The position numbers and the translations under genes were made by a program. A stretch of DNA of 64,000 nucleotides from Guillardia theta CCMP2712. Lineage: Eukaryota > Protista > Cryptophyta. The stretch's first letter is position 1; the number at the start of each line of letters is the position of its first letter. The stretch lies in NCBI RefSeq assembly GCF_000315625.1, contig NW_005434458.1, forward strand, positions 1-64,000. Direction: 5' to 3'. Positions 2,993 through 31,029 of the stretch are shown piece after piece. The notes beneath the pieces are model-generated. The model had not been told where the DNA came from. It saw only the letters and a program-made list of their open reading frames with translations, and did not search any database.

Positions 2993-3041
2993 AGCAGCAT
3001 CAAACGCCGTCTTTCCCGAACTTCGGAACGGGAAGGGGGGC

Positions 3042-4733: not shown

Positions 4734-4870
4734 GGGCCTGTGTGTGTGTGTGTATGTGTATGTGTGGAAATGTGGAAAGTAAAAGATTCAGACCCTGCCC
4801 GGCCACTCCCGCCCCAGCGCTGTGGTGTGCCGCATCATCTCTATTTAGGTCGGAACCGAGACGGGACGGC

Positions 4871-5760: not shown

Positions 5761-5853
5761 CTCCCTCCCTCCCTCCCTCCCTCCCTCCCTCCCTCCCTCC
5801 CTCCCTCCCTCCCAGGCTGTCTCTGTCTCTGTCTCTGTCTCTGTCTCTGTCTC
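5761..5853. repeat. (CCCT)n followed by (CTCTGT)n microsatellites
   Basis: Directly visible. Confidence 0.95.
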
Positions 5854-6129
5854 TCACATAAACACACTGCTTGCTCTCTCTCACTCTCTCTGTCTTTCTG
5901 TCTCTGTCTCCCTGTCTCAGTCATCATCAGCTGTGGTCTCCGGATTTGGGGTTTAGGGCCAAAGGACGATGGCAACAGCTGCATGGTGAGAGTCAGCGCC
6001 GGGCCCGGCAGCCTCAGGCGATCACAGACTGTCAGAGTCTGACTCATTGGGAACTTTTGAAGGGACAGAAGGGATCGGATCGGATCGCTGCTCTCGGATA
6101 AGAGGGTTTTGTTTTCTCGAGTGCTGCCG

Positions 6130-9100
6130 CTACACAGTGACAGTAACAGGAGAAGGGCAGCTGGACGAGGAGCTGCAGGCGCCGGTAAGAGTGGAGAGAG
6201 GTACAGAGAACTTGAGGAGAGGAGAGGGTTGCTGCTCCGCCAGCCTGTAGGGAACAGGAAGGAACGCGAGGAGACCTGTGCAGGCGGGTGAATCAGCCAG
6301 AGAGGAAGAGCAGGAGGGAAGTAAGGGAGGCTGGGCAGGAGTGACTGGAGCAGGAGGAGGGGAGCAGGAGGGCTTGGAGTAGGAAAACGAGGACATCGAA
6401 CAACTGATGGCAATCAGCGAATGAGGATCACGACCTGGACTGAGGTAGACGAGGAGGACGAGGGGGAGGAAGAGAGGAGAAAGTGGAGGAACCGAGGAGG
6501 GGTAAACCTCTCACCTCTCCGGCGGTAGCAGAAGGTCATTGTGCTGGTAGAGTTGTCCGTCAGGAGCAGCTGGAAGGTGGAGATCGACGTTGATCCTCGC
6601 GAGTATCGCTGGGTGAGGGAGAAACCCCCCGTTTGCACCTCCAGCACCTCCGTGCCGGGCACCATCTGAGAATACTTGCACCGATCGACAGGCTGGGCTG
6701 TCCCGTCGTCCACCACCATCTTCAGCTGGTCACCTGTTGAGAGCAAGCCGCGCATGGTAGCGAGCACGGGTGCGCCGAGCGGGAGAGGAGCGACGGGTAG
6801 CTCCACCACAGCCTGCGACAGCGGGAAGCTGAGCCCCCTCTCCGGTGCCCAGGGGACGACCCGGAGAGTCCTGTCAAGCAGGCTGCCGCTGAGGATGCAG
6901 AGCTGGGCTTGCTGCTCGTCGGTGAAGTCAAGTGCGAAATCTTGGGTGTGGAGCTCTGGAGTTCTGATGAGGAAGGGACCACCCCCGGGCAGCACTGACT
7001 GACAGTCTCCAACGCGCGTGATCTGCATGCTGTCGTTCACTCGCACCCCCGAGCCCAGCAGGGTGAGGGAGAAGTACACCCCGCGAACAAAGGATCCTGG
7101 GCTGATGGGCAGGCTCTCCGGCAGCCCCAGCACGGTGATGTTGTCGTCCCACACTGAGAATTGAACGTCGTCAAACATGTCCACTTTGCGGGCCACCTGG
7201 AACGGCACGAGTTCAAGCCAGTACCAGCTTGTCTGAGGCTGGGGTATCCCCAGGCCCTGAAGGTTGAAGGGGGCGAGGAAGGAGACGGCGCCGGAGGTCA
7301 GGTCAATAAGGACGAGGCGGGTGCTGTAGAGGAGGAGGTAAAGCTTGTTTTCGCTCAAGCACGAGGGTCCTCCCACAAGGTCTGCCTCCTGCTCCGCCTC
7401 CATGACTTTAAGAACCTTGGTTGCCCTCCCGCTGTACGAGTTCAGGCTGAAGAGCGCGACTTCCGTCCCTCCTAGCGTGCTGAGCCCTAGCAGGCCATCG
7501 TCGCCGCTAGCCTTGAGGCTGCTGTGTCCCGCAAACTGCAGGGAGAAGAATCCGTCGAAGTTTGACACGTCGGGCTGCCAGCTGGCATGGGAGAGGGTCT
7601 GTCCCGTGGTGGAGTCAAGTGTGAGGAGGGCAAGGAAAGAGGCGCTGAAGTAGAGGCCAAAGGTTGGACTGAAGGCTGAGAGTCCTCGCTGGAGAGAGCA
7701 CTCGATCGAACCGCAGCTGGGAATCACAGCGAGCCGTGTGACGTTTCCAGAAAACCTGTTGGAAGGAGAAAGCAAGAGGATATTGAAAGGAGGAAGGAGG
7801 AGAAGAAAGCGAGCGAGAGGACAGCAAGAGGAGCAGAACAAGAAGGGAAAGAGACAAGGAAGAAAGATTCGTGAATGGAGAAAAAGAGGAAAAGGAGAGA
7901 AAGATAGAAGGAGGTTGAGAGGAAGATGAGGAGAAATAAAGTCAAGCATTCTCAAAACACAACTGTGCATTTGCTGCTCACCTGTCAATGGCGCAGTAGT
8001 AGGAGCCATCGTCCATGATCGCTATTCCCACCAGTCTCTCACGCTCGACATCCCAGCGCATGGAGACGAGCTCGTTGACGAGAGAAGCGCCGCTCTTGAG
8101 GAGCACGGTGGTAATCTCATGGGTGTTGAGGTCAAAAGAGACCAGGGATATGCTGTCGACGAAGAAGACAGAAGAGAAGGAGGCATCGACTGCTGAGATC
8201 TGCTGCGCAACCTCCTGCTGGCTGATGTTGGCAACCTGTACAGCCTGCAAACATCCAAGTCACCATGCAAGACATTCGGGATCTTTATGTTGCTGGTGAA
8301 TTTCGCCAGGTCTTGACAAACCCGTTGTCCTTCTCTCCTCCTCTCGTCCTCTCCTGCTCTCCTTGTCTTCACTTTCGCTCTTCTCTCCATTTGCCTTCCT
8401 CCCCTTCTTCCCTCCCCTACTCCCCTGCTCCCCTCTTTTTTCTCGTCTCGCGTCCTCCATTTCTTACCTTATCGGGACTTGAAGCGTCCAGGGCCACCAG
8501 GATCCCATTGACCAGCGCCAGCGCAAACTGATGAGAGTCGCTGCTGGGGCTGGTGAAGTCGCTCTGGTCGATCAGCTGGTTGTCCTGACTTGAGATGGTC
8601 TGCACGACAAATTCCTGCAGAAGCCCAGCTGTAAGACCACGAAAACAGGTCAAACAGGTCGTCAGGACTTACGGGGAGCATCGGTGTAGTCTGTAGGAAC
8701 GTGAGGCCGTCCAGTCTCATGGCGGCAGTGAACGGCTGGTCGAGGCCCCTAACGCCTTGTGGCTTGAGCTTGAGGATCTTATTACCTCCGACCGAGATCG
8801 AAGTGCCGGCGATGACAAGGTTGTCAAAGGGCCCGTCGAAGAAGCCGATGCTCGCCTGCTCGAGGTTTGCTGGGGTGCTGTAGAACTCGATGCGGACCTC
8901 AGAGTCAGGAAGCAGCGGGTTGCTGGAGCTGAAGCTGACGAGCAGGGAGCTGGGCACAGGAGAGATGAAGGAGGGGAGACTGAAGACAACGTCGGACATC
9001 GTGCCAGGGAGCAGGTGGACTCCGTTGACCTGCATGTTCATCTCGATCATCTCGTAGCTACTCACAAGGGTTAGCAGCTGGAAGGTGCCGCTGAATCCGC

Positions 9101-12100
9101 TGAAGCGTCTTGACCGCACGCGGGGAATGGTGAGGTCAATGGTGTCTAGCTTTCTGTACTCCTTCCCTCCGTATCTCTTGAGCAGCAGCGTCGTGCTTTG
9201 CTGCTGGGCAGGGAGGCTCGATGGGTCGGGGAGGAAGACGCAGTTGTAGGGGGAGAGGTAACCTTCGGCAAGCCGTTGCGGATCGCATGCTCCTAACTGG
9301 CTAGGGGAGGAGGAAATCTCGACAGGGTATCCATCCAGCTCGGTGTAACGAGGAAGATCCGGAGAAAAGAAACCAGCTGGGAGTCTGACAACGATCCAGG
9401 CGTCAGGAGGGAGGAACGAGCGAGTGGTGAAGGTGAGTGTAATGTCTGACTCGCTGCCGCAGCGGAGACTGGCGAGCTTGTACTGGGCGTTGGCAATGAC
9501 CGTCGCAAGCATGTACATGTTGTTGCTCAAGCCATGGTCAATCTCATAGCCGTCCTTAGTCAGAGTTGTCACCTGGACTGCTGGGACTCGACCGGAAAAG
9601 AGCTGGGAACCGAAGCCATGGAAGGTCAAGTTTACCCACGACTGCGCGGGCATGGCTGAACAATTCGACTCCCTGCTGGGGACCCGTTGGAGGCGGATGC
9701 TTAGACCGACGACGTCAGTGATGGCGATGGAGCAGTCAGGCCCCGAGAGGTTGGAGGTCGCAAACGAGGAGAGGACGGAAAAGGTGCTCGGAAGGTCGAT
9801 GGAAAGTCGCGCGTCCCTCGGGAGTGGGTTGCGGATCTGGACCGCAAGGTTCAGCTGGGGTTGACTAGCAACGACATAGTTGTCAAGATTGGACTCCACC
9901 CTCAGGAGTGCATTGGGCTTGTACGCGATGACGTAGTTTGACCTGTGCGAGCTCTTTGCGGTAACGGTTGAGTTGAGGGACACAATGTAGTTGACGCTGA
10001 AGGCCCCGGCCGGGTTCAAGACATTGAGGAGTTCAACCGTGTTGACTGTGCTCTCCGGAATAGTCTGTGGGGCCACATACTTGACAAGCAGCAACCCCAC
10101 CTCGTACAAGACTTCCCAGCCAGCTGTGGCTGAGCTGGGCGGGAGGTAATCGGAGAACTCCAGCCTCTCCTCGGTGATGTTGATGGTAAGGACGGCTCCG
10201 GTGTGGACTGGGCCGCTGACGGAGAACACGACAGTCATGTTTGACTTGGCGCCTGACAGCAGGCTTGACTTGATCATTCTGATCAGAACAAAGTTTGCAG
10301 CGTGGACAGACAGCTGGGGGATTAGGGAGAGGTCGACCTCCTGGTTGTCACCGTTCAACGTCCTGATTGTCGCTGGCCCCGTCCCTCCCTCGTACAGCTG
10401 AACTATCACGTCCGTGATCTTTAGTTGGAGCACGTGGCCCAGCTCGACCTCCCTGCCATTCCCTTGTCGCTGGATCCTGAGAAGGTTACTCTTCATGTAC
10501 GTCGAGAAGTTCCCGTCCAAAATGCCAGTAGCAGCGCGAGCTGCGAGGTCAGAGCCGATGAGGCTGACGGGAAAGACTTGCGAGGACGGAGAGAGCGCGA
10601 AGTCGTGGTAGAGGTCCAGGTAGATCCTCCCATCAACTGGGAGGGGGTTGGAGAGGATGAAAGTCAAGGTCGCCTCCACGACCTCGCCAGCTCCGGAGGA
10701 CGTGAGGGAGATGCTAGGACTGACGCAAAACGGGGGGCACGCGCCGCTCATGGTGCCATGGACGACTTGAACGCCCTCGACGCTCAGGTCCTGGTCGATC
10801 GCGACATTGTCAGCGGTCAAAGTTCGGACTTGGAAGGTCCCAGACTTGCCGACGTAGGGCTGCGACTTGACGCGATCGACGACCATGGAGAAGGGGCGGA
10901 GAGGCTGGACAGTGTAAAGGCTGTCTAGAATCTTAACGGTCAGGACGTTTCTCTTAAGTACGCGGACTGCCAGGCCCCGGCCGAGCTGGTGCGAGTGGAG
11001 AGCCGTAGGAGAGTAGACGTTGAGAAACTCGATGACCGAGGAGTTGTCAAGTACTTCGAACCCGCCGGGCAGGACGATCGCGATGGAGGAGGAGGGAGGG
11101 AGCAAGTTGGCGGGGGTGAAGGAGATGTGGAGCTGGGACGAGGAACCAGCGGTCGTCTCACTCATGGCAGCACGCACAAGAATGGTGGCGGGTTTGAACT
11201 GGAAGCGAGCTAGCTCGACGTTCTGGTCCAGGATGAGGCCGTCCGGGTTCTCAGTGAACAGCTGGAAGAATCCTGAAGGCCCGGAGAACATCTGGTTGCG
11301 GACGAGATTGAAGGTGAGGGAGAAGCAGCCCACTGAGTTGTCATGCAAGCGCATTTCGATCACGTTGCCGTTGCCTGAGACGTTCCCTGCCACCTCCCTC
11401 GCCAGCACGTTGACCTGCTGCGAGGAGGAGGCGTTCAGCTCCTCGCAGAACTGTAGGGAGTGAGACGATACCAGCTGGAGGAAGGTGTAGTCCTGCTCTA
11501 GTTCGACCGAAAATGACAATGGCATCACCAGTCTAACTCGGCCTCCAGCTGGAATGACGTTGTCAACCCCGAACAGCAACAGCAGGGTCGAGTTGTCCCC
11601 AGCTACGTCCGAGCTCAGGGACATGATGGAGCGGAGGAAGCGGTTGGGGCGGATGTCGAACCCGGGATCTCGAGCTTCGTCGACCACCTGGAGGTTCGGG
11701 TTTAGAGTCGAGACGTTGAAACTTCCGCTGGTTCCACTCAGTCGGGGGACTCGAACGTTGCTGAACATCATCAGCAGCAGAGCATGAGGGCGGAGGGGCG
11801 GTAGCTTGACCCTGAGGAGGAGACTGTCCGTCTGAGAGGCAGAAAAGAGCTGGAGGGGAGAGGAGTAGTTAACGGCGCACGAACAGCTCGTGCAGACCGC
11901 CTGACATCTCCGGGCGTCGCAAGAGGCGTTGAGGAGACATGCGGAATCGTTCGCCTCCCTTATCGTCAGAGACGTCAGGAACGGGTCGCTGACTATAAAG
12001 GTTGGAGGTAGCTCAACTTGCGCCCAGGAGCCGTCCACAAGCGCGTTCTTGACCTGCATCTCGACCGTCAGCCCGTCACTGCCCGCCAGGGCCTCCTTTG

Positions 12101-15100
12101 CTCGCACTGCAGCCCGGAGCAGCTGGTCTGGGACCAGCAAGCTTGGCAGGAAGGTGGAGGAGGGAGCAGGGCACTTGGAGGAGGAGGGAAAGCATTCCAT
12201 AAGCACGGGGCCTTGGATGGTGCAGAGCTCGAAGGAGCCCGAGGGGCCAGAACGAGCTGGAAGCCGGACACCCTCCAGCTGCATGGCCAGCTGACCCTGA
12301 TAGAACTGTGGGAAGTTTGCGGCGGGGGTGAGGACGGGGTTCAGGTAGATGTACATGTTGTCATGTGTCACGGCGATGAGGTCAGTCGAGGTTCCCCTCC
12401 ACCTGGCCGTCAGCTGCTCTTGGATCGGCATGTAGTCTCCCGGAAGCTTCAGCCGCACTGTGCTGCCGGCAGGCAGTGGGAAGGAGGGGGAGAAGTCGAT
12501 GAGAAGGTCCGTCAGCCCTCCGGCCACCGAGTTCCGGAGACTGACCACCGAGTCGGAGAGGCAGGAGGGGAGGAAGATTACAGCTGGAATGCTCCAGTTC
12601 GCGTCGACCTGGACACCGTTACTGCGGGTGGTGACTTGGTAACGCCCTCCCGAGCCGCTCACGAGGGGATTTCTGACGTTGCTGAACGTCAGTTTGACTT
12701 CCGCATTGCTGCTGATGTTGAGCTGGCTGGCACCAACAGTCACCTCGTTAACGTCAAGTCCAATCAGCTTGAAGGAAGCGACTTGGCTGCCGTCAACCGT
12801 CACGTCAAGTAGCGAGAGTTGGTTGATGTCCATGGACGACGGGAAGATGATCTTGAAGGAAGGGAAGTTCCATAGAGAGTTTCTAGTCGTGAATGAGAGG
12901 CTGACGTTGCTCAGATCGCCGACAAAGGACGAGGAATGGGCAGCAACAGCATCCAAAAGAGCCGCCGGTACGATCGAAGGACCTCTTACCATTGTCTCGT
13001 CGATGACTCTGTTTGCTGCGTCCAGCGTTCGCAGTCGAACGTCGCCGGTGCTGCCTGCCAACGGTCGATTGAGGAGCAGGCCCTGGAGGGAAATGGAGAA
13101 GGAGCAGGAGAGAGCTGTTCTCCGCGAGATCGCTTTCTCCGATGGGAAAGAGAACAACTTGAGATCCCCTGCTAGCTCGCAGAATGTCGCGCTGGAACAG
13201 TCTGAGGAGTGGGTGATGGTGAGGCGGACATGCCTGAACTCAAGGCAGTAGCTCAAAGCTCTCACGTAACTTTGATTGTACGCGATCACTTCCTGGTAGA
13301 CTGGGACGAAGTCAACGCCGTCGGCCGAGGCTGAGAGTTGAAACCTGAGGGTCGTCGGAGCGCTGGCACACTGGGATAGGGAAGAAGGATTCATGTCCAT
13401 GGCGAACCCACAGATCAAGATTCGCGCCCCGAAGTCTCTCGTGATATTCTGCTGGACGACAGGCGTGCAGGACGAAAGGCAGAAGTAGTCAGGAAGAGTC
13501 GCCAGCACTCGAGCCCGGGTCGTCGCTCCTTCTCCAAGCTCGACGAGGCTGTTTACCTCCACCCCCTCCTTGCAGGGCGTGTAGACCGTGTCCGTGAACC
13601 CCCCGACCGTCACTGTGTGATCAGCGACGTTGGCAGAGAGACTTAGAGGCTGCAGCTGGGGCAAAGCTGGATCGAAGAACTTGAAGGAGGAAGCGTTGGC
13701 TGCTTCGACCGCTCCCCAGTCGAAGTCCGCGGCTGGGAGGGTCAGGACGATATGACCATCAGAAGGCAATGGGTTGGAGATGATGAAGTGAACGAGCAGG
13801 CTGGTGGACATGCCAGCCTGCGGATCTTGAAGGTGGAGGTAGGGGAAGAAGAGATTGCCGGGAAGAAGGAGGACGGGAGGGACGTTGAGGTCTTCTTCGA
13901 AGACGATCTCCTCCGACAGGATCGTCCTAAGCTGGAAGGTGCCAGTGGCTCCCGAGACCTGAGGGTTCCTGACGCCGTAGTAGGAGAAAATGCTTTCCTT
14001 CCATGCCGGAATCCTCAGCCTGACCTGCGTCCGGCTGTCGAGCACAGGAGCTGATGTCACGGTCACGTCGATAGCCATCCGCCTCGCCCCCCGCATGCTG
14101 ACGCTGCAGTTGCCTGCTAGCAGCGCGTCGACCACCAAGCACGTCGGAGCGGAAGAGAAGGGGGGGGGAAGGCTGTTGGAGAAGGAGAAGCCGTCTGGGA
14201 GGGCGAGCTCCACGGTGAAAGTAGCAGGGAAGGGGTTGAAGTTGGAGAAGGCGAAGTCGAAATCAGTGATGTCTCCTGCTTTACGGGACGCAGGGAGGAT
14301 TGCAGTGTCCAGCAGGCGGCCTGCCGTCAAGCGGACAGTTGGGAGTGTCACGTTGTCGTTGATGTCGATAAGGTTGACGTCCTGGTCAGACGATCGGATC
14401 TTGAAGGTGTTGCCGCACCTTACGGAAGGTACGAAGGTCTCGAAGGGGAACTGTACTCCCTGCAATGTGAAAGAGAAAGGAGTGAAGGCAGGGAGCGTCT
14501 CGCCCACGTTCTTGAGCGAGATCGCGAGCTTGGCACCGGGAAACATGTCCGTATTCTTCGAGCTGAGCTCGAGCTGAAGTTGGCCCTGCTGGGATACCAC
14601 CTGGAGACCTGTCTTGATGTAGACCGAGTTTCTCCTGCTCTCGTCCAGCAGCTCCGTGTCAAGTCTGAACCCGTCGGGGAAGGCAAGGAAGAGGTACCCT
14701 CCGTGAGGGATCGGGTTGGAGGTCGCGACCTCGATCTTCACTTCTCCTCTTGCCCCGACAATGAGAGGGTGAAGGGCAACAGAGGCGTTCAGGAACGAGG
14801 GCTCCAGCAGCGAGCCAGCGATCGCGGAGCTCTCACTGATGGTCAAGTTCCCCCTTGTGGCTGTGATCAGATAATTGCCGGTCAGGCCGTCATGTTGCGG
14901 CAACCGGATGTTCGAGACATAGAGGTTTACCGGCAGCTCTCCAGCATAGAGCTCAGCTGAAGTAGCTGACACCGACCGCAGCTGAACTGTCTGCCCGGTG
15001 GTCGACAGCTCCAGGTCCTGCTGAGTTTGGAGGGGCAGGTTCTCTATGATAACCTGCAATCTTGCTCCATACGCGTCTGCTTGCCACTTGTTGCGCATTT

Positions 15101-18100
15101 TGAAGGTGATCCTGAGCTGGGCCCTGGCCATGACGACGTCTGTACACGTCAGCACCAGCCTGCTGTACTCCTGGAAGTCGACGCGTATGTTTCCGACTGT
15201 CTCCACCATTTCCAGCGAGTTGTTGGAAGAGGAGAACCCGTCGAAGATCCCGGAGAGAGTGATGGTTGTTGAGTTTGCAATGACAAAGTTGGGTTCCATG
15301 TCAATGGTGACTGTCGCGATCGCCCCGATGACATCTGAGCTTGAGGAAGCAGAAAAGCTTGTCAGGCCAGGCACGCGGGCTGCATGGAGGAGGCAAGGGC
15401 CGTTCATGAGCTCCTGCTGCTCTTGGTTGACTTGGATGCTTGCAAGCTGCGAACACTGAGACGCGTGGGAGGGGTTGCGGAGGAGGAAAGAAAGGACTGT
15501 CTTGTTGCTAGATCTCATCGCCTCTGAAAGAGTGAACAGCATGCAGCCGGAACCTGTCGTCTCCTGCTTGACCCACTCAGCACTTGTGACCTCGATGTTC
15601 GACCAGAGACGGAACGGGAACGATTGGTCGGCGGAGAACGAATGGGAGGACGTTTGTGAGAACTGGATGTCGCAGATGGAGATGTTGGACGCTGGTTGGA
15701 GGTCCTTTCTTGGCTGGAGAGTAACTGAGATCAAACTGAGCGATCCGAAGGCGTCAGAGGAGGAGGAGATGGTCTTGACCGTCCACGAAGAGGCGTTGTC
15801 CATCTTGGCGACGGTGGTCACTGCCAGCTTCTCGCAGGAGAACACGTAGGGCGTTCGGATCAGAACCGTCGCAGCCTCCAGCGCCCTCAGGTCTTGAATG
15901 TCAAAAGAGACAACTGTCAGAGCATCGCAAGGGAGTTTCCTCCCTGCCAAGAGGGTCAGCGACACTTTTCCCTGCTCCTCGTCAAACGTTCCTGTCTCCC
16001 CAAACTTCTCTGCGTCCTTGTTGTACAGCTGCAGCGTCCTCGTCCCCACCCCCCCCGTGACGTTTGTACCGTTCCCGACGAGCAGCTCGATCACGACTGG
16101 GGAGTCGATGTCGATAAATGGGAGCAACTTGACAGTGAAGCTCTTCCAGCTAGACGACAGCTGGACATTTAGGTCCTTGACCTGCCAGGATGACAAGTCC
16201 GGGTTGACCTCCACTCGCTGATTATCCACCAACGTCGCCACCGTCCGGCTGCACTTGCGGATCACGTGGTACGCCGGGCCTACCAGCGAGACAGGAGGGA
16301 AGGTCGCCCAGTTGTGCGGCTCCTCCAGCACAAGGACCGGTCCCTGGTAGGTGTTGGCCCAGGGGTTCCCCTCGCACGTCACGTTGCCGCAGGTCAACAC
16401 CCGCGGGTTGTAGGGCCTGTGCATGAGGGCGATGAACTCGTAGTCGGAGAGGTTGACCCTGACGTTGCTGTCCGCGTTCCGAATCTCATAACTGAAATCA
16501 ACTTTCACGTTGGCGCTGACCCTCTTCCCCGCTATGACCGTGAGGCTCATCAGGTTCAGCGTTGGGTCCCAAATGGCGTCGTTGAAGATCGAGGCGCTGG
16601 GCCCCCACAGCTGCTTCACCTGCTTCTCGCACGTGCAGTAGTCCCACAGGGACCCGCGAGACTGGCTGATCCAGACCGCCTCGTCCCCATCTGCTACAGC
16701 CTGTGCTTGCTCCGAGAAGAGCTCGCTGGTGGCACACCAGGCGCGTCCAGGGATGAAGGGATAGTCTGTTCCCATGTACGCCTCGCTCACGCAGCTCGTG
16801 TGGTTTTTGCCGCGGAAGAAGAAGGGGAAGACGCACGGCGATCCGGTCAAGCTCGTCCCGTTGCACGTGCTAGGAGCAGAGAAGTCAGCTGGGAGCTGGT
16901 AGAGGAGGATCTTGGAGCCCTCGAGCAGGTTGACGTTGACTGTGAAGCTGATGCTGACCGAGTTGTTGCCAAGCGCTATCAGCGAGCTAAATGTGATGCT
17001 GGGAGAGCTAAGCTTCGCCTCCTCGGACACCCGCAGGACAACTCCTTCCATCTCTCTCCAGCTGTCAAAGCCCGTCGCTGCTGCCATCACCCGCGGTCTC
17101 ACACCCTCGGACAAGCCGGGGGGATTGCGAAGGTTGAAAGAGAAGATGAGGTCAGCATCGTGCAGAGTGAGCTGGGAAACTGTCGGAGACACTCTGACGG
17201 TCAGCTGGCCACTCGAGGCGTTCCAGGTGGCCGATGGGTCGAGGAGGTTGGATGGCTGATCGAGAGTGACGTCACCGTCGGGGGTGAGGGAAGACGTCAA
17301 GTTGCCAATGTGAATGTAAGTGCCTGGCCGGAGGGCGAAGGTTGACCGCAGGGTGACTGTGATGACGTTGGTGACGTTGCCGACGTCGCAGTTCTGTGAG
17401 ATGGTCCTAGTGATGAAGGTGAACGGTTGAGCCTGGCAAGTGCCGTTGATGCATGTGGCTGCTGGCGCTGCCAGCGAAATCAGACTATCCCATGAGGTCG
17501 AGCTCGGCCTGACAGTGACGTTCAAGGGAGAGGAAAGGAAAGGAACATCTGCTGCTAGAATGAAAGAGAAGGACAGCGTAGTCGCGGGATCCAGAGAATC
17601 TGGGAGGATCGCTAGCGAAATGCTGCCGGCTTCTGGGTCAACAGACTTCACCGTCAGCTGTCCAGCTGTAGCGACGAAGTCGGAGATGTTGGCAGCTGGT
17701 CTGACATTCAGGCCCGAGAGGACAATTTCATGTCTGGATGTCAGCAGGAAGTTCACTTGGATCCAGACTTTGACCTCGAACAACTCGGCTGGTTGTACGG
17801 TCCGATACATCACTGAGTTCTGGTAGAAGGAAGGCGGTCTCGTGACCGACAGCTCTCGACCTGACAGCCTGCTAACTGGCAAGCAAAGACCTTCAAGGCA
17901 AGACGGCAAAGCCACTTCCATGAGGGGCTGACAGAGGGCCGTTGAGAGTTGACTGGAGACGAGGAGGTAGAAGGAGAAAGAGAGTGGTTGTCGTGCCGAG
18001 ATGACGTCATTAACAAGAAGGGACAAGGTTCCTTCGTCTCGAGACCAACTAGAAGTCGCGGAGAGTGCTGGCTGGAAGACTGTGGTGAAGTTGGTCGAGG

Positions 18101-21100: not shown

Positions 21101-24100
21101 TCTCTCCCATGGCTGCCACGTCATCGTTCCATGCTGACATGTTGTTCAGCTGTCTGCTGCTGTCTTTGATCCGCACAAGGACGGGGTAGAAGCCCTGCAG
21201 ATGGCAGTTGACGATGCCATGCACCTGTAACAAGAAGTGCCGGCCTGACTGCAAGCTAAGCTGAGAAACTACTTGGAGGTAGTCCCCTGTCACCTTAACT
21301 GTTGTAGAACGGTTGACACAAGCGGAGGAGTCGCAGGACTGCGCGATGACAGGCTCGACGGCCCTGAAGCAAAGTGGAAGGAGCAAGACAAGAGAGCAGT
21401 CGCAGTTGAGCTGATAGTCGAGGAAGAACGAGATGTTGTAGGTCGTCTTGACGCCGATGCGGTCGTCAAGGGGGATGACACTGACGTTTGCAATCACACG
21501 CGCGAGGTAGTCCTGAGTGAACCATGCAGCCTCGATGACTGATGAAGCTGAGACAGACGATGTCTCGATGAGGAAACGTGCAACTCCCGAGGCGTTTCTG
21601 CCAACGAGACCACGGCAGGCAAGAGATACGAGCTCCCTCGCGCCCAGAGGCTCCTGAAAGTGCAGAACGAGGACGGTGGGGGATGTCAGCGAGGACGAGA
21701 CGTTCCGCCCGTCGCTAGAGCAGCTGGCATCATCCAGCATATACGACTCAGGTGACAGACAAGTCAGAACAAGAAAATCTCTCGAGATGTCAAGTCGGCC
21801 AGTGTAGAACGACAAACTGACACCTACTACATCCCCGACTTGGTCCGAGCTGAAGCTGAACAAGAACTCTCCGAGAGAGTCGGGCCTGGCGATTGATAGG
21901 CTAGCAGCCCCCAGTTCGATCATACCTTGGGAGACAATCGTTGCTATCGTCACGTTGGAACTGTTTGCAAGAAATCCAACGACGTCAACGTTATGAATCT
22001 CCACCTCGATTCTAGTCATCGCTGGGATCACTTTGACCTTCCTCCTTACCACATGCAGTACCCCCTCCTCCAGCAGCGAACAGGACCCCCCCGCTTCGTA
22101 CACCACGTTCGAGTTCGGCAAAGTTCCCACTTTGACAGAAGAAGAGACAACTTTCCCCACCTGCACGAATGGAGGAAGAACAACCTTGAAGGAGCCGTCA
22201 GCTGGGATCAAGTTGAGGTTGCGGAAGGAAAACTTGAGAGGCCCGTGATAGCCGTTGACCAAGCTGGAGGGTGTGACGAGCAACCCCAGCAGAGAGGACG
22301 GAGACGACGAGACTACAAAGCTCACACTGTCGAGCAGAAAAAAACCAGCTTGACTGAAGTCAATCGAGCTTAACCTGAGCTTGAACTGCCCCGCAAAATT
22401 GGGGTTGACCAGGCCCGAGATTTTCAAGCTGACCTCCTGCTGAGGAGGCACATCGAAAGCGCTTCGGACTCGTCGCAGCAGTACCGTGCTGTTGGGCTCC
22501 AAGTCGACATCTCCATCCATCCCGGATATGACGGTAGCATGCGACTGATCGAGCGTCGCAAACTCAGGCGGCAGCTCAAGCTCGAAGCCTCCCCCTTCCG
22601 CTAAAACCTTGCTCTGAAATCTGACGCGCACGACGAGCTCGGACGTCGCTCCTGCATGGCTGGGGATCAGCTGGGCAGAGAGGAGCGACGCCTGTCCTGG
22701 AAGGATGTCGATGCCTGGGAGCGAAGACTGCAAGCGCAAGAGTCCCTGATGCTCCTCCGCCTTCACTTCAATGGCTTGACTAAGTCCAGCTCGGGTCGGA
22801 AGCAGCACGATTGAGACGTTGATGACATCAGAAGAAGAGACAGACTCAGCAGAAGGAAGCAATGTCAGTCTCCTGCCGTCCCCAGAGGCCTCGCCGAAGG
22901 CAAAACTAGAGCAGCAATCAGGAGGAGCCATGAGGGAGGGAGGCAGAGTGATGGAGATATTGCAGGAAGAGAGGTTGCGAGCTCGAATTAAGAATCGGAA
23001 TCTCGCCGACTGATTCACTCTGATCTCACTCTCAGGAATGAGTTTTGCATATGCGAGATGCTCCTCCCTCAGCGCGACACCAGCAACCACATGCTGGGCA
23101 TCGATCGAGGTGCCGTCTTCCATGAACGTCGAGATGTCGAACGAGTCCAGCTCCACCCCCTTGAACGGTTCCTTCTTCAAGTTTGTCACAATAAATGAGA
23201 TTGAAAGGTCGGGAGGGATGCGATCGCCCAACACCTTGAGGACGAGGAAGCAGCCCCCCGAGCACACCCCATTTGCATCCTGAGGGTAGAAGTCGTCCAC
23301 CAGCAGCTCTGCCGACATCCCTCTTGTGTTTCCACTGCAGGTCGGTTGATACAGCTGGACGTCAGCTGGGAATTTGATCATAATCAGCCCGTTCTGCGGG
23401 ACCTCGTTGGACAGTCGCAAGCGCATGGAGGCAGAGGAGCGGAATCCTTTCTCGGCTACCATGATCTCCATGTCCGCCTCGGGGATTGGTCCAGCTGTGA
23501 TGGAAGAGAAGTTGAAGAGTTCACTAGCATCGATCTCCTGTTCGAGGCCCGTCAGGGTCCGAACGGTCAAGGCCAGCAAGGGCCCAGCATGAGGTGGGAG
23601 AACAACGCCGGGAACAAGCAAATGCAAAGTTCTCCCTCCAGCGAGTCCCTCCAGCTTGTCAAGGCCAAGGAGGGAAACCACAGCTCGGCTCGTGCTCGAG
23701 GTGACCAGGAGCTGCTTAAAGAAGATGTTGACGCCAGAAGTGTTGACACAGACGTCAGACCGTTGCAGCTGGGGGACGATCCCAACGCCCTCAGGCATCT
23801 CCAGCCTGATGCTTCCTCCAGCTGGTAGAGGGTTGGTGAGCTCGAGGCTGAGCTGGAGGGAAGCGACTGCCCCCGCAACGTTGGGCGTCAGAATTGCATC
23901 GAGGTTGTTGAGGACGTTCGAAACGACCTGCAGCGTCTGAGAGAAGCAGTCGACTGGACGGCTGGTGGAGCTCCAGTGGTAGGACGTGCAAACATGCAGG
24001 CTGACAGTCTCGATGAAGGGAGAGAGCTTGACTGCCGACATCAGCACTGACAAGCTCTCGGCAGGCTCAAGAGTCCGGGTGCCCGTGGGGACAAGTCGGA

Positions 24101-27100
24101 TAGAATTCTGACCGGCGAGGAGCAAAGAGAAGTTAGAGGGGTTGCTGGAGGAGAGCTCCAAGATTGAAATGTTGAAATTTGGCGGGAAAGTGATGTCGAT
24201 GCTGCCGTTGCAAGGAATGGGGTTGAAGAGAGTCATGTTGAGCGCTACCTCAGTTGTGTCTCCTGCTCTGAGACTGCCGAAAGTGAAGAAGGATTCGTTC
24301 AGCACGTGCCTGCCCACCAAGATCGAATGACCCACTGAGGAAGATACAACGAGGTCGGTGAGTTCCGTCGAGCGGTAGAAGAAGACGTCAAGCTGGTATG
24401 ACCCTGAGATGGGAGGCAGTCTGGTGTCTTGAAATAGCACGTCAAACTCCAAGATCTCGATCAAATTCTTGCACCTCTTGGTGATTGGACAGATTTCGCA
24501 CCCTGTCAGATCCTCCCAGGACTGCAAGAGCGAGAGGTTGTGGAAAGTCACCACTGAGTCCTGCACTGAGACGAGCCCGGGGCTCACCAGCATGTCTGCC
24601 CGTCTGACTGCAATCATGCTGACGTCAACTTGCGCCTCCACTGGGAAAGTCACGACGAGAGCAACGGGGAAGGGATGCGAGCGGCTTATCCGCAGATGCA
24701 GCCCAACTGTTAGGGGTTACGTAAGCGGTTACGAATACTTCAGTCAACTAGCTGTCTTATCCGGTCGGTTTGGTTGGTTTGGTAGGTTTTGGTCGAATAA
24801 AATGGATCCGAACTTTCTATACGTTCAGTGAGCGCGATTGTGTTGAGGTTCCTGTTCGCTTGTTAACGCAAGTTATCAAGTTGGTTCAAGTTCACAGAGT
24901 CAAAGCACATCATCAGGATTGTCAATCCCTAACATTGGTAGCGTAAGGTTTGGTTTTTGTTCGAAGTAATTGCGGATTGCGACAATTTGATTTGATTTGA
25001 TCGACAAGGAGCTTGAAAGGTAACCTCTGGATATGCAATCGGATGTAGAAAGGATAAGAAGGTCTCCTGGAGATGGTCCTCTTGGAAGTTCAGGCTTGGC
25101 AGTCATGCTTGACAACTTTAGAAGGAGTTTCGATGAGGAAACGTCTGAAGACAAGACGATGAGGGAAGTTACGACGGTACCTTCTACCTCAGAAGAGGAT
25201 TCGAACGGAAATCAGCGAGACGTCGCGGGATTTTCGAGGATTAATATACCTTCTTATGATGGATCGGTCACGCAACAAGTGCGCGACAGGGAGGGCGCAG
25301 TGGACTTGGAAATTTCCAGGATTGCGTCTCCGGCAGGTTCGACCCGGCCGAGGTTCGAATCAGTGCAGTTTGAAGAATTGGTCGCTGCAAACAAGAAGTT
25401 GCGAGAAGAATTGCAACTCGCAATGGACATGCAAGTAAAGTATGAAGCTTTCGTCAAGGAAGTGATGTTTCGTAAGGAAAGAGAGCTCGTCGAGACAAAA
25501 CAGGAAATCTCTGTCCTTAGGGAAGAAAATAAAAAAAATGTTCGAGGAAATGATGCAACGGTTCAGATTAAATGAATCAGGAGCAGTTCAATACCTTCCG
25601 ATCAAGGAACCAAGAGGGGCTGATGCAACGTGCAAGCAAAATGATACGAGCATGTCGAATGACATGTCAAGTCAGCATGTCAAGCAGCAGTCTTCCCTTG
25701 TGAAGTTTCATTCCAAGGATATTTCTCGATTTAATGGAGAAATGACTCTAGAATATTCCGTTGCAAGTTGGTTTGGGGAGCTTGAGTTTCAATTCCAGCG
25801 TCAAAGAATTCCTCCAGATCAAAAGGTTGACATCGCTGCAACATTAGTTGGTAATCGTGTGAGGAATTGGTTGCAAACATTGCGTGGCGAGGATAGATTA
25901 ATTTCCACACAAGGTACTTGGGAATCATTCAAATCGTTGCTGGTGAAGGAATATTTGTCGTTGTCGCACTTGCAGTATATTCTGGGTGAGATTCAACGTA
26001 CGATACAAGGGTCAGAGGAAAAGACTTCGGATTTTGTCAACAGGTTTTCAGCTTTAGCAAATCATTTTATTGCTTGTTGCATGGTATTATTTCATGGACA
26101 AGGACAAGTCGAGACAGCTTGCACGAGGTTTGGTCTTGAACGGTATTTCGCACAGAATTTGTTCGATGAGGTGACCGCGAGTTTCGTCATGAAGTTGTTG
26201 ATTGACTTGGAAAAGCAAAATGTGAACAAGACTTTGAGTATTGGGAGTTTGTTGCCAGCATTGTATCGAGAAGCTAAGTCCATGGATTTGACAACCGATG
26301 CGTATAGGAATGACAGGTCAACGCATCATGAGGTTTCGTACGATGATGAGTCAGTGGAGGATACCGACGAAGATTCTCAGCATTCATCTTCGACTCAGGA
26401 TGAGCAGGACTTACGTGAATAACATTGGCCCAATGCACTTCGCGCTACTCAATTGAAATGACTTGAGTTGGCTGCCGTTTTCTTGTTATGCAGTATTTTA
26501 ATGATCAGCGAAGTTCATAGAGATGTTTCTCAGATGATAATGCGCTTGGGAGCGTATGTTAGGGGTTACGTAAGCGGTTACGAATACTTCAGTCAACTAG
26601 CTGTCTTATCCGGTCGGTTTGGTTGGTTTGGTAGGTTTTGGTCGAATAAAATGGATCCGAACTTTCTATACGTTCAGTGAGCGCGATTGTGTTGAGGTTC
26701 CTGTTCGCTTGTTAACGCAAGTTATCAAGTTGGTTCAAGTTCACAGAGTCAAAGCACATCATCAGGATTGTCAATCCCTAACACCAACCGTCCTGGTATC
26801 CCCAGCCGAAGCGTTGGTAACCTGGAAGCTAGCTTCCATGCTCAGTAGGCCTCTAGTAGAAGGAGACTGCTCGCTCGCGTGGGGGTCGACAGGCACGAAG
26901 TTGTCGAGGGAGGAAGACTGGAAGTTGGTGAAGCGAGAAGGACAAAGTTGATCGTAAACAATGTCAACGAGCATCAGCCGGTCCAGACCCGCGAAACGAC
27001 CAGCGAGCAGCGAAACATGGACGTCCATCAAGACTGACAGGAAGCTCGTGACGCCTTCACCTCTTGGCACGTCGAGCAGCGTCAAGGAGGCCGTTGGACC

Positions 27101-30100
27101 CGCCAGACTTACCTGAACCTCAAAAGAGCTGGTGATGTTGTTGACTGAGACGTTGCCAATGGTGACGTTGTCAAGTCGGATCACAACCTTGGTTCCGATC
27201 GGAATCGTCTGGTTGAACTTGAGGTCAACCTGCAAACTGGCATGGGCAGAGTTGCCCACGAGCGGACGGGAAACAGGTCGCTGACAAGCGTCCAAAGTTC
27301 CTTTGTGGCTCAAAGAGAAGTTGCCCTGCACAACAGCGGGAGGAAGGAGCAGAGCATCGAAAACAACCTTCAGCCTGGTGTTGAGCTGGTGGTTGTCGAA
27401 GGAGATTGCGAATTGAAAGGAATCCTGACATGACTCCTTCTGAAGGTACCTCAGGTCTAGCTGAAACCATGAATCAGCCTCGATGGAACCTAAGAAAGTG
27501 CACTGCAAGCTGAGGAGCTGGGAAGAGACGTTGGAACTTTGACAAGTCTGCGGTTGACCGTCGATGTGAAGAACGACCTCGGTCTGTCCGAGGAACAAGA
27601 GCGGGCTGAGAGACTCTATGAGGATGATGGAGGATGGCTGGACTGGTTGGCTGATGCGCCCGCTAACGTGAGCATGGATGAGCGAGGGCTCCATGGCTGG
27701 AGTGAGAGCAGCTGAGACGTTGATGCAGCAACTCTCTTCCATCTGCAGCTGCACATCCTGACAGAGAACAGCTTCTGAGCCGCAAGAGAGAGATGGAAGA
27801 ACTTCTGTCATGAGCTGTCGACCTTCCAGTCTAGGGTCGAAGTTTGTAAAGTTGTACACATTCATCATGACAGCAGTGTCGCCGTCGCAAGGGATCTGTG
27901 TCAAGCTCCAGTCACTCTGTGAGGAGTTCCCAGGGTAACGAACTCGCAGCGACTGATTGCCGCAGCATCGACTCAACTTGCAGGCATCGATCAATAGGGA
28001 GAAATTGTTCCGAGCAAAAGGCAAGAGGATGCTAGGAGAAGTTTCGAAACAGTTCTGATGCAGGAATGGCCCGGAAACGCTCAGGTTCCAAGACACTATC
28101 CCATCCACTGACGTTTTGCTGTACGTGTGCTCATGCAGAATGACTTGAAAGTCTCCAGCATATCCAGTGCACAGACTGTTACGGATGTCAAACAATGCGA
28201 ACGAGAAGGGAAGGTCGGACTGAATGTCCTTTGACACCTTGAGGCTGACGTGACCATCGTTAGCCTCAACCAGCTCTAAGGCATTTGTGTTGTTGGCGAA
28301 AGCCCCTCGAGCATTGAAACCAGTAGGAAAGTAGATCGAGAACGTCTCGTTAGCTCTCAGATCAGGTTTGGTGATTGTAACCCACATAGAACCCGTCTCG
28401 TTCACTATAGGATTGTCAAAATGCAACTGACATGTCAAATTCCGCGGCCAAACCCTCAGCTCCCCACTTGACCTGCCCCGTCCAACGATCTTAGAAGTCT
28501 GATCAAAGATGGTGAAAGAAAAAGGATCAAGAAGTTGCGAGCTCCTGGGATTCAGAAAGCCACATACGGCAAAGGAAAGATTGAAAGGTCTCAGATCACT
28601 GTACCTCTTGACGTAGTTGATCTCTATCGCAAAACTTCTGGGAGATGACAAGTTGGAGGAAGGAGTCATGGAGCAATTATCGTCCATCATCATGTTTGAA
28701 CAAGAGATATTCTTTGCACCAGTTTCGGTTCCGTCCACATTCGCAGTAAAGAAGAGATTCGAATCCGACAGACATAGATCCGATAGTTCCAACAGCCTGA
28801 ACCAGAAAAACTGTAAACCGACAGGAAATTCGAGCCGAATTTTCGAAACGACGAACAAATCTTTCAGAAAGAATGAAAACTTGGTCTCTGAGTCCACCAA
28901 TAAGTTCGACCAGCGAGTAGAAACGTTGTATGTTCGAGTTGCCAGCGAAGCACTTTCTACTCTAGAACCGAAACATCCCAGATTCGGGTAGCATGCAAAG
29001 ACCCTAAAAAAATACTGTTTGCCTAACTTGAGATTGCAGCTCACGACACCGTCCAGGTTGCTGCCGTAAGAGTTCCCAAAGAACATATGAAAAGTTGCGT
29101 TGGATAGGTTATATTGCCTGATGAAACCACCCGACGAAACGCCCTTGCTGTCCAAGAAGGTTTTCGGGTCGTAGGATACAATGAATGAATTTGGATCGAA
29201 TTTACAGTAAGTGTCGTTTGTTGAAACATTACAAGAGTCCAGGATAGCTTGATTGGGAGAGATAGAATTACATAGACTTGAATTGCACACCGTGTCGTTG
29301 AAAGAATATAAATTTTGTTTGCACATTTCGCGGAAGTTTTGAATCTCCTTGGATGACGAGCATCCATGGAGAAGGTGCGATTCTCCCTGTCGTGATACGC
29401 TCTGAATGCTCACACAGGAATCTCCAGCGGGACATATTTCAACCCCGCACGTGCGACATCCCTCCGGAAGGAAAATTCCTCTGGTCGTGTAACATCTCAA
29501 CGCGAGCATTCCCGGGTCAAACGAACTTTCACTGTCTGCAAACTGCAACATGAAGTGCGAGGGCTCTTCGAGAAACAATGGCCTACTCCATGCCAACTGC
29601 AATAAAGACACGCCATACTGCGAGAGCATTGGCTGGTAGGGAGGATTAGGGTTGATGGTGAACGGGCCGACGGAGAACTTGGCTCCAACTCTTGTCTCAT
29701 GAAACGCAAATAATGATACCTCGTAAAGCGTAGTGTCTAGCAAAGAATCGAAGACATATTCCGTGACATTCAAGGTCAGTTGTACCGTCGAACAATTCTC
29801 AGTAGCCAACCCCTCACAGCGCATACTTCCTTTGCCGGTCCCCACGTATAGAGTCAAGCTGAAGCCTCTTGCAGACCCGCATGGGTCGCAAGCACAAGAA
29901 GAGTTTGGCAAACCATCCAAGGATGCGGGACAATCCCATCGCACCGAGAGTGAGCTGTTGTCCAACCGATACAACCTCACACGCTGCGGAATCGTTGGAG
30001 CATTCAACATTTGAAAAGCGACATGATTTGATCGTTTTGTGATCAAGTGAGAGATGTTCTGGTTAACACTCCTTACAAGTGCGACTGAAAGATTGTAGAA

Positions 30101-30418
30101 CTGACCGAGCTCCAAGTCTGCCAATTCGAAAGTGACATCATTGCATTGACAAGATTCTAACCATTGAATCTGGGTAGATAGCAGAGGAAAACTTTGAAAC
30201 GATGAGTTTGAACCTTGCGAGGCATCATTGTAAATGTGAACAAGTGTATCGTTATAATCCCAGACTGTCAAGTTCTCCAGCTGAAAATTCAGTACGACGG
30301 CAAGATCCTTGTACTGTTTCACTCGTAGATTGACGGAATCGAAAGATATCGTCCTCTGTGACCAAGACACTTGCAGGGACAATAGGAGACAGAGGAACGT
30401 CGAAACCCCGTGTTTCAT
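6130..30418 (-). CDS. Giant secreted/surface repeat protein (>7,100 aa reconstructed), interrupted by an LTR element
   Basis: Signal peptide from ATG 30418 (MKHGVSTFLCLLLSLQVSWS). Exon 1 = 30418-26784 joined to 24702-8673 (6,555 codons after removing the insertion). Phase-compatible exons follow at 8614-8468, ~8244-7982 and 7755-6515; the last exon and stop are uncertain. Recurrent ~140-170 aa units: AG..(F/L)..xNP(L/I)PxxGx(I/V)x(I/L)xxPxGF..VxN..GxxGxFx(I/L)xT..ID. Confidence 0.85.
13150..13460 (-). other. Discoidin/F5-8 type C-like module inside the giant protein
   Basis: DFGARILICGF..LRFQLSASADGVDF..EFRHVRLTI resembles the SxDGxxW/F..RYVRL motif. Confidence 0.45.
16630..16870 (-). other. 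Fibronectin type II domain inside the giant protein
   Basis: TGSPCVFPFFFRGKNHTSC...RAWCATS...WDYC matches the FN2 consensus CxFPFxxxG..C..WC.T..W.YC. Confidence 0.85.
24708..24934 (+). repeat. 5' LTR
   Basis: TG..CA ends, 8-bp terminal inverted repeat, no difference from 26557-26783 seen by eye. Confidence 0.97.
24936..24948 (+). promoter_or_regulatory. Primer binding site, probably for initiator tRNA-Met
   Basis: TGGTAGCGTAAGG starts 1 nt after the LTR and is complementary to a tRNA 3' end ..GCUACCA (A1-U72 pair typical of eukaryotic iMet). Confidence 0.65.
25033..26422 (+). CDS. gag: Gag (coiled-coil N-terminus plus Ty3/gypsy-like capsid), split by one extra A in the A8 run at ~25531-25538
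   Basis: ORF 25033-25575 joins ORF 25538-26422 as EENKK-MFEEMM if one A is removed. Capsid motifs: RFNG..VASWFGELE..QKVDIAATLVGNRVRNW..TWESFKSLLVKEY..IQGSEEKTSDFVNRF (MHR-like). No CCHC knuckle. Confidence 0.85.
26557..26783 (+). repeat. 3' LTR
   Basis: Copy of 24708-24934, preceded by a short weak purine tract (TTGGGAGCGTA). Confidence 0.97.
28930..30005 (-). other. Two FN3 domains; the second carries a Ly6/uPAR-like Cys-rich insert (~29260-29500)
   Basis: FN3 motifs APTIPQRVRL..SLSVRWDCP..LLDTTLYEVSLFA and PPYQP..LQLAWSRP..LKLGKQYFFRVFAC. Insert reads LRCY..CPAGDSCVS..HGCS..C..CNSSLCN. Confidence 0.65.
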
Positions 30419-31029
30419 GCAAGATCCTCTCCTTGTGCTACTCCTCGCGTCTTGATCCCTTTGATTTGCTTGATGACAACTCATACTTTGACTCGACGCT
30501 GATTTCATTGCTGCAGAGCAGTCTCCCTTACCTTCCCTCCACCCTCGTTTTTGAAAGCTGTGTCCTCCCTATCTCCGTTAAGCTTGCTCCCTCTGGATGA
30601 GTTCGCTCTTGCTACCTCTCGTAGCTGCCCCAAAGCTTCGTTCGCTGCACTGAACGTGTCACTCCCTGAAACAATTTCGGTCTAGTCTTTTACCTTAGAC
30701 ACACTCAAGCTTCGACTATTCCTGCAGATGCATAAGTCATGGATGCTTTATCTGCTCGTCTTTCTGCATGGATTCCTCGTCTCTTTCTTCCTTCGCCCCT
30801 CCTCTCCATCGCGCCGCTCGTCCCCAACAGCCATTCCACCGACTCGGAAATCCACTATCTATCACCCCCCATCCCGCCTTGCTAATTGTACCACCCCATC
30901 AGCGGGTACCCACTCACCCAGTGCATTGAACATTTCATCATCTTTGTAGTGGGGGTGGGGGTAGTGACCCCCGGTGAGTCAATGACAATCGTGAAGGAAG
31001 AGCCGTCAAAATTATGTAGCCCTCATCTC

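Follow-up and report, generated by a model that had tools for sequence, protein, structure and literature searches.

A giant repeat-protein gene of Guillardia theta, most likely encoding an extracellular fibre or coat protein, is split by a young LTR element

Two very long open reading frames (ORFs) lie one behind the other on the minus strand of a contig of the cryptophyte alga Guillardia theta CCMP2712, with a long terminal repeat (LTR) retroelement between them. Do they represent two genes or one, what would their product be, and where did its parts come from? The window that we analysed is a stretch of 64,000 nucleotides (nt), positions 1 to 64,000 of contig NW_005434458.1 (C216:1-64000), and coordinates without a contig name refer to it. 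ORF1 (26771-30508(-)) encodes 1,245 amino acids (aa) and ORF2 (8469-24653(-)) encodes 5,394 aa. The original prediction, made from the letters of the sequence, had read them as a single gene, running from 30418 down to 6130, for a secreted protein built of repeats. Our best explanation of the locus as a whole, to which we assign a probability of about 0.7, is that it is one member of a family of giant genes, that it encodes a secreted fibre protein composed of immunoglobulin-like (Ig-like) units, and that the copy in the sequenced strain was recently disrupted. Database searches were run on single ORFs and exons, one at a time.

The element between the two ORFs is an apparently gag-only LTR retroelement of 2,076 bp at 24708-26783, inserted on the plus strand, antisense to the gene; with its target site duplications (TSDs) it occupies 24703-26788. 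Its LTRs (24708-24934 and 26557-26783) are 227 bp long and 100% identical, with the termini TG...CA (TGTTAGG...CTAACA), and are flanked by a 5-bp TSD, GTTGG on the gene strand, at 24703-24707 and 26784-26788. ORF1 terminates three codons inside the LTR (...TRTVG-VRD-stop). When we deleted the element and one copy of GTTGG, ORF1 continued in frame into ORF2 as ...AGDTRTVG-LHLRISRSHPFPVALVV..., and the restored junction read ...AGDTRTVGLHLRISRSHPFPVALVV... in one frame. Exon 1 is then 19,665 nt long, and this 19.7-kb frame contains no stop codon apart from that introduced by the insertion.

Two independent neighbouring genes, in phase by chance and with the LTR element in their intergenic spacer, would be the simplest alternative, and public annotation points that way: model P0002 (1,079 aa) covers ORF1 aa 167-1245 alone, and no model of at least 2,967 aa from the window came back for ORF2. 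This alternative leaves no room for a spacer, however, as the two frames meet without a gap when the element is taken out together with one TSD copy, and ORF2 lacks a start codon carrying its own signal sequence. It also has to contend with the relatives of the gene. A word-based protein search with ORF2 returned a single relative, P0001, a 5'-partial protein of 6,173 aa from an 18,598-nt contig. It starts with 243 residues that match ORF1 aa 1001-1243 (56% identity), after which it runs on unbroken into ORF2 (68% identity over 5,353 residues) and remains colinear through exons 2, 3, 4 and 5, reproducing each predicted join. The C-terminus of P0001 is that of Hanusia phi EukProt entry P0162, barring one intron that is read through in P0162. 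Because the joins are reproduced and the C-termini are identical, we identify P0001 as the Hanusia phi orthologue in its spliced form.

A search of the G. theta genome with a profile of the repeat, described below, found paralogous giant frames. One of these, at C84:139092-159443, is a single uninterrupted frame of 6,784 aa with a signal peptide at its start. It is colinear with both ORFs, in ORF1 over aa 56-525 (E 2.6e-33) and in ORF2 over aa 372-2745 and 2894-5277. This C84 paralogue has its own Hanusia orthologue, P0005 (6,738 aa), with 64% identity over the full length; the closest relatives of the proteins in the window likewise came from Hanusia phi, at 64-72% identity. Since both the Hanusia phi orthologue and the C84 paralogue are continuous across the insertion site, the very point at which two genes would require a break, we conclude that ORF1 and ORF2 belong to one nuclear gene, one of a small group of related giant genes, in agreement with the original prediction. 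That they are separate genes appears highly improbable. The public annotation, a protein of 1,079 aa with the remaining sequence split or left unannotated, would accordingly give way to a gene of ~7,150 aa, which would be one of the largest genes of this model cryptophyte.

Counted from Met31 (30418) the gene encodes 7,153 aa, and from Met1 (30508) 7,183 aa, with a predicted product of ~780 kDa. Met31 immediately precedes a hydrophobic leader, MKHGVSTFLCLLLSLQVSWS, and in an alignment that is in register it stands level with the initiator Met and signal peptide of the C84 paralogue, which starts MKAFLFLIFFVLQVAG. For these two reasons Met31 is the likely start codon. All parts of the gene lie on the minus strand. 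The 5' part of exon 1, derived from ORF1 (26789-30418), contains the Met31 start, the signal-like leader, an N-terminal module and diverged repeat units, and the 3' part, from ORF2 to the first splice donor (8673-24707), contains ~34 repeat units and inserted modules.

The long frame reaches a GTAAGT donor right after ...TTPMLP, the first of four 3' introns, behind which exons 2-5 contribute ~600 aa. All four introns are of the GT...AG type, 58, 223, 226 and 239 nt in length. Intron 1 (8615-8672; GTAAGT...TGCAG) yields the join TTPMLP-EFVV, corresponding to SSPTLP-EFLV in P0001, and is followed by exon 2 (8468-8614), whose 49 aa share 63% identity with P0001 residues 5583-5631. The join across intron 2 (8245-8467; 223 nt, GTAAGA...TTGCAG) is colinear in P0001, as is AIDR-FSGNV across intron 3 (7756-7981; 226 nt, GTGAGC...CAACAG); between them, exon 3 (7982-8244) encodes 88 aa, including a split Arg codon, at 65% identity to P0001 residues 5632-5719. 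Exon 4 (6515-7755) encodes 413 aa of a C-terminal non-repeat domain that is predicted to be all-beta and shows 72% identity to P0001 and P0162. Intron 4 (6276-6514; 239 nt, GTGAGA...GCACAG) is the one that differs between the Hanusia phi sequences, being spliced in P0001 and retained in P0162. Exon 5 (6130-6275) adds 48 aa and the stop codon at 6130-6132, and has no hydrophobic tail. The ends originally predicted for the gene thus coincide with its stop codon and Met31, and its predicted size, its single giant exon and the confinement of introns to the 3' end are all borne out. The downstream exons are phase-compatible, as had been said; only the limits of intron 3 needed a small correction, to those given above. 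Just 3' of the stop codon, at 5760-5930, lie long (GGGA)n and (CAGAGA)n microsatellites.

How old is the insertion? The 1.6-kb interior of the element carries plus-strand ORFs, one of them with a weak match to Retrotrans_gag (E 6.6e-4; 20.3 bits against a cut-off of 24.1), and a search of this interior for pol found none. Full-length copies are present elsewhere in the genome at C114:210345-212420 (100% identity), C408:6294-8368 (99%) and C51:67448-69521 (98%). The element thus represents, to judge from these copies, a young, recently mobile, non-autonomous LTR family. Because its LTRs are identical, a full copy at C114 matches it at 100%, and the 19.7-kb frame around it has not acquired a stop codon, we regard its insertion into the gene as very recent. 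As an observation in its own right, this gag-only family appears to have been active recently despite having no pol of its own.

With the antisense insertion in place, translation would stop once 1,245 aa had been made, three codons inside the LTR. We searched the assembly for an insertion-free allele and found none. A related copy on another contig, C6, was considered as a candidate for such an allele and rejected, being only an internally deleted fragment. Nor was there any match in metagenome contigs to a 24-nt probe for the insertion-free junction, or to P0162. Since translation would end in the LTR and the assembly holds no insertion-free copy, the copy in the sequenced strain probably represents a newly formed null or truncated allele in which decay has not yet set in. 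Such an allele would amount to a natural knock-out, and isolates without the insertion could serve for comparison.

A different possibility is that splicing removes the element and so makes it tolerable. Read on the gene strand, one TSD copy ends in a G that precedes the TG of the LTR, and the other begins with a G that follows the CA of the LTR; together they create the ends GTGTTAGG...CCCTAACAG. Removal of the 2,078 nt that carry these GT...AG ends would join ...ACGGTTG to TTGGGCTG..., keep the frame and add one Val, so that the predicted product would read ...TRTVVGLHL.... The donor of this putative intron, GTGTTA, is unlike those of the four real introns of the gene (GTAAGT, GTAAGA and GTGAGN), however, and at 2,078 nt the intron would be about 10 times their length. 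We therefore consider splicing of the element very unlikely and retain a disrupted allele as the preferred reading. Splice-like ends such as these (24707-26784(-)) arise in general with TG...CA elements when the duplication has a G as both its first and its last letter.

The C6 copy (C6:347492-352522; loci L018, L017 and L002) is a partial duplicate of the gene with an internal deletion. In it, ~0.95 kb with 95% identity to window positions 14793-15738 is fused directly to the 3' 3.1 kb, which corresponds to 6304-9394 at 93% identity, plus the 3' end; the protein of its exon 4 is 98% identical to that of the gene. An environmental sequence, P0161 (an ENA contig of 4,760 nt), is 96% identical to exon 4 and is an exact match to neither the locus in the window nor the C6 copy. 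Its source may be a different strain of Guillardia or a closely related species.

What kind of protein would this gene encode? We iterated a hidden Markov model (HMM) on the gene's own sequence, which mapped ~34 repeat units in ORF2 (each with E 1e-9 to 1e-32) and one clear unit in ORF1. The units are ~125 aa long, share only ~20% identity among themselves, and have the consensus AG....l.F...N.lP..g.i.i.lP.gF ... GVrNp.fSG..G.F.l.T......iD, so the dozens of diverged beta-rich repeats that had been noticed in the sequence are indeed there. According to the HMM domain table and alignment, a first array of ~16 units of ~125 aa (17931-24302) is separated from a second array of ~16 such units (8820-15344) by a middle region (15345-17930) that contains shorter variant units, a fibronectin type II (FnII) domain and ~325 aa of Cys-containing modules. 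The shorter units of the middle region were considered as a possible second repeat family; on iteration they merged with the main profile, and we treat them as variants.

An AlphaFold 2 (AF2) model of one unit (10785-11174), computed from an alignment of 21 internal units, was a nine-strand beta-sandwich with a pLDDT of 86.6 and a pTM of 0.78. Foldseek returned weak matches to this model (E ~1e-3, TM ~0.5) among cohesins, BslA, CBM3, ClfA and pilins. With an exhaustive structural aligner the top match was YcnI (Z 10.1), followed by a flat series at Z 7.3-9.2 comprising Gram-positive pilin, macroglobulin receptor-binding and MSCRAMM domains, and cohesins. The model thus places the unit among Ig-like, adhesin-type beta-sandwiches, a fold that does not name the family.

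Sequence profiles did not name it either. There was no Pfam match for the repeat units in the ORFs and nothing consistent among 21 single units, an NCBIfam scan of the repeat found no match, and the repeat profile produced one chance-level match among PDB sequences (E 0.15). These results agree with the original view of the repeat as Ig-like and possibly unnamed, and no well-characterised family was found for it in Pfam, NCBIfam or PDB sequences. The only Pfam model that recurred among proteins with this repeat was DUF2808 (PF10989), with summed scores of 33.7 bits in P0029 and 29.3 bits in P0062 (cut-off 25.3) and weaker scores in P0036, P0043 and P0037. Against the gene itself it scored 13.8 bits (E 0.059) in the first half of ORF2, below the cut-off of 25.3, with no match in the second half and none in any of the 21 single units. 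DUF2808 has a cyanobacterial range, and the papers found to mention it are all cyanobacterial studies. As the model is itself uncharacterised and without known function, the link gives the repeat no name.

Several modules interrupt or flank the arrays. The N-terminal module (ORF1 aa 56-525; 28934-30343) is common to the C84 paralogue and Hanusia phi: it is 26% identical to C84 aa 25-493 over 470 aa (E 2.6e-33) and 25% identical to P0005 (E 9e-33). Searches with this module of ~500 aa found no match in Pfam or among PDB sequences, and the ~325 aa of modules in the middle region received no Pfam assignment. The FnII domain (16710-16835) scored above the Pfam cut-off (PF00040; E 3.4e-6, 27.4 bits against 22.2) and matched MMP-9, MMP-2 and fibronectin chains in the PDB with E values from 1.7e-7 to 1e-3. 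It lies inside a repeat unit, between the N-terminal strands and the rest of that unit. Profile positions 1-35 of 42 were aligned and positions 36-42 were not, and the C-terminal part is atypical: three Cys have the usual spacing, and the next candidate Cys, judged by eye, is ~37 residues further on. The domain has in common with those of animal fibronectin, MMP-2 and MMP-9 an above-cut-off Pfam score and matches to solved domains; unlike them it occurs only once, within a repeat unit, and in the protein of an alga.

Another repeat unit is split by a 94-aa insert (13251-13538), recognised as a gap in the HMM map. Its language-model feature matches (0.91-0.94) were mostly to F5/8 type C clusters, with no Pfam match at E <=0.1 and no match among PDB sequences. 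The insert is possibly a discoidin or galactose-binding-like module, which we offer only as a lead. Of the ligand-binding-type modules originally proposed, one, the FnII domain, could therefore be confirmed, and the discoidin-like insert, lacking a profile match, could not. The exon-4 domain is 72% identical in Hanusia and 29% identical to the C-terminal exon of the C84 paralogue, and an Atlas search with exon 4 produced TIG and beta-propeller leads, all of them below threshold (0.76-0.85).

From the N-terminus onwards the protein would thus consist of the N-terminal module, ~35-40 tandem Ig-like units with inserts, and a C-terminal domain of ~600 aa that is free of repeats and is spread over four small exons. 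The hydrophobic leader at its N-terminus aligns with that of the C84 paralogue. The sequence contains 121 N-glycosylation sequons and ~2% Cys, and outside one beta-rich stretch none of its 19-residue windows reached the hydrophobicity of a transmembrane helix. A signal-like N-terminus without a transmembrane stretch is consistent with the secreted protein that had been predicted. Plastid targeting was considered as well and found no support: no transit-peptide-like stretch was obvious by eye after the leader. We suggest that the protein would enter the secretory pathway, become glycosylated and leave the cell, where it might be either released or held non-covalently. Outside the cell it could form a long, rod-like structural or adhesive fibre or layer of the cell covering, in which the Ig-like units would act as a stiff stalk or spacer and the inserted and terminal modules as sites of binding or self-assembly. 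An extracellular fibre or coat protein seems the most likely product, and the more specific proposal of a rod-like adhesin or surface filament is plausible.

A number of points weigh against this interpretation. The proposed function was deduced from the architecture of the predicted protein. The signal peptide was recognised by eye, and from its alignment with that of the paralogue, rather than by a predictor. We found no transmembrane, glycosylphosphatidylinositol-type or wall-sorting anchor and no hydrophobic C-terminus, which leaves attachment to the cell unexplained. The structural matches of the unit model are of a strength that many beta-sandwiches would give and say nothing about function, and the AF2 model of exon 4, built on a four-sequence alignment, reached a pLDDT of only 32 and was discarded.

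The closest architectural parallel is with bacterial fibrillar adhesins, which have stalks of tandem Ig-like domains. The gene has the corresponding architecture, a leader and a long stalk of ~34 tandem Ig-like domains; like these adhesins, it would produce a very long secreted chain of beta-sandwiches with a few modules that probably bind. The unit model superposes on domains of bacterial stalks (pilin, MSCRAMM and cohesin domains, Z 7.3-9.2), and the same repeat is present in giant bacterial proteins. In contrast to the adhesins, the host of this gene is a eukaryotic alga; its protein has no sorting signal, membrane anchor or secretion-system domain, it has an FnII domain, many sequons and ~2% Cys, and its units match no named adhesin-domain family. 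The predicted product would belong to a familiar kind, giant surface proteins with tandem Ig-like domains.

To our knowledge, the molecular make-up of the outer cell covering of cryptophytes is essentially unknown, and this gene family provides concrete candidates for it. A comparison with the cryptophyte periplast suggests itself. The periplast has a proteinaceous surface component, according to work from 1997 as it is cited in PMC12223506 and PMC6212826. With a periplast polypeptide the predicted product of the gene shares its algal group, secretion, very large size and the lack of a membrane anchor. The family is kept across cryptophyte genera, and size, secretion and taxon are all that the link rests on; the sequence of the Komma caudata periplast polypeptide was not found in the papers searched. 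The family (this gene, its relatives on C84, C85, C234, C77 and C95, and the Hanusia and Teleaulax orthologues) might comprise the secreted polypeptides of high molecular mass that build the periplast surface layer by self-assembly, with a beta-sandwich that came from giant bacterial surface proteins. We regard this as speculative and on balance unlikely.

Where did the repeat come from? A search of representative protein clusters with the unit profile found 1,996 clusters at E <=1e-3, 688 at <=1e-10 and 168 at <=1e-30. The taxon was looked up for 30 clusters, most of the top matches being metagenome proteins without one. These 30 included the cryptophytes Hanusia phi and Teleaulax amphioxeia, bacterial proteins of 2,700-4,700 aa from metagenome-assembled genomes (MAGs; several from Omnitrophota, one from a deltaproteobacterium and one from a Dehalococcoidales bin), one EukProt entry without a name and, for the remainder, metagenome proteins, of which some lay on contigs of 195-510 kb. 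The top match, P0003 (5,426 aa, 29 units), has no Cys and a typical bacterial leader, features on which we take it to be bacterial. Within G. theta, at least six further loci carry the repeat in frames of 2,890-6,784 aa (C84, C85, C234, C77, C95, C19 and C15). By these matches the repeat is a large uncharacterised family, unnamed without being an orphan, that is common to cryptophytes and bacteria. Its ~2,000 clusters would connect cryptophyte algae to giant proteins from Omnitrophota and other bacteria about which little is known.

One possible origin, compatible with our best explanation, is that the repeat region is bacterial: a gene for a giant surface protein would have passed from a bacterium into an ancestor of Guillardia, Hanusia and Teleaulax, and the signal peptide, the FnII domain and the intron-bearing C-terminal exons would be later, eukaryotic additions. 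The many clusters, whose named members among those looked up are either cryptophytes or bacterial MAGs, fit this idea, but most of the top matches are metagenome proteins of unassigned taxon. Against the HMM of this gene, the units of bacterial-judged proteins have median scores of 46-55 bits, higher than the 21.5 bits of the C84 paralogue's units; in that set P0053 comes from a named bacterial MAG, and for P0003 and P0013 a bacterial source was judged from features of the sequence or the contig. The repeat region forms a single intron-free exon and the C-terminal domain has four introns, as would be expected of such a history, but tandem duplication of an intron-free unit would also yield an intron-free array. 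The repeat was found in 1 of 201 sampled Planctomycetota genomes, which counts for the idea; its occurrence in bacteria is sparse, and transfer from a eukaryote to a bacterium, or an old shared domain, could also account for it. In a tree of units, cryptophyte and bacterial units were separate rather than interleaved, which argues against the idea as far as a tree without an outgroup, and with supports left unexamined, can be read; such a tree does not show in which direction a transfer would have gone. We hold a bacterial origin of the repeat region to be a tentative possibility, rather less probable than its opposite. Three bacterial loci related to P0053 were searched for the repeat, which was absent from them. 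In the same tree, position-matched units of different cryptophyte proteins grouped together, and on this weak ground the array of the giant gene looks old rather than recently expanded.

Base composition had suggested another kind of mixed origin. The 5' 2.7 kb of the gene has a GC content of 0.45-0.48 and a third-position value (GC3) of 0.51-0.57, compared with 0.57 and 0.72 for the rest, and the C84 paralogue has the same gradient, its GC content rising from 0.485 (5' end) to 0.61 (3' end). Since the paralogue has both a homologous N-terminal module and this gradient, we consider the AT-rich 5' end a trait of the family and not a recently grafted foreign piece. The original prediction had thus seen the AT-rich start correctly, but the paralogue gives no support to an argument from AT-richness to parts of different origin. 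A mixed origin in another sense than AT content may apply because the repeat is common to giant bacterial proteins. Seen along the single ~20-kb exon (8673-30418 in the window and C84:139092-159443), composition rises steadily from 5' to 3' in both paralogues, GC from ~0.46-0.49 to 0.60 and GC3 from ~0.51-0.56 to 0.75. The planctomycete occurrences of the repeat are in frames of ~1,745 aa at two loci of one genome, L026 (G040:C1:33180-36524; E 1e-13) and L027 (G040:C63:6594-9935; E 2.5e-11).

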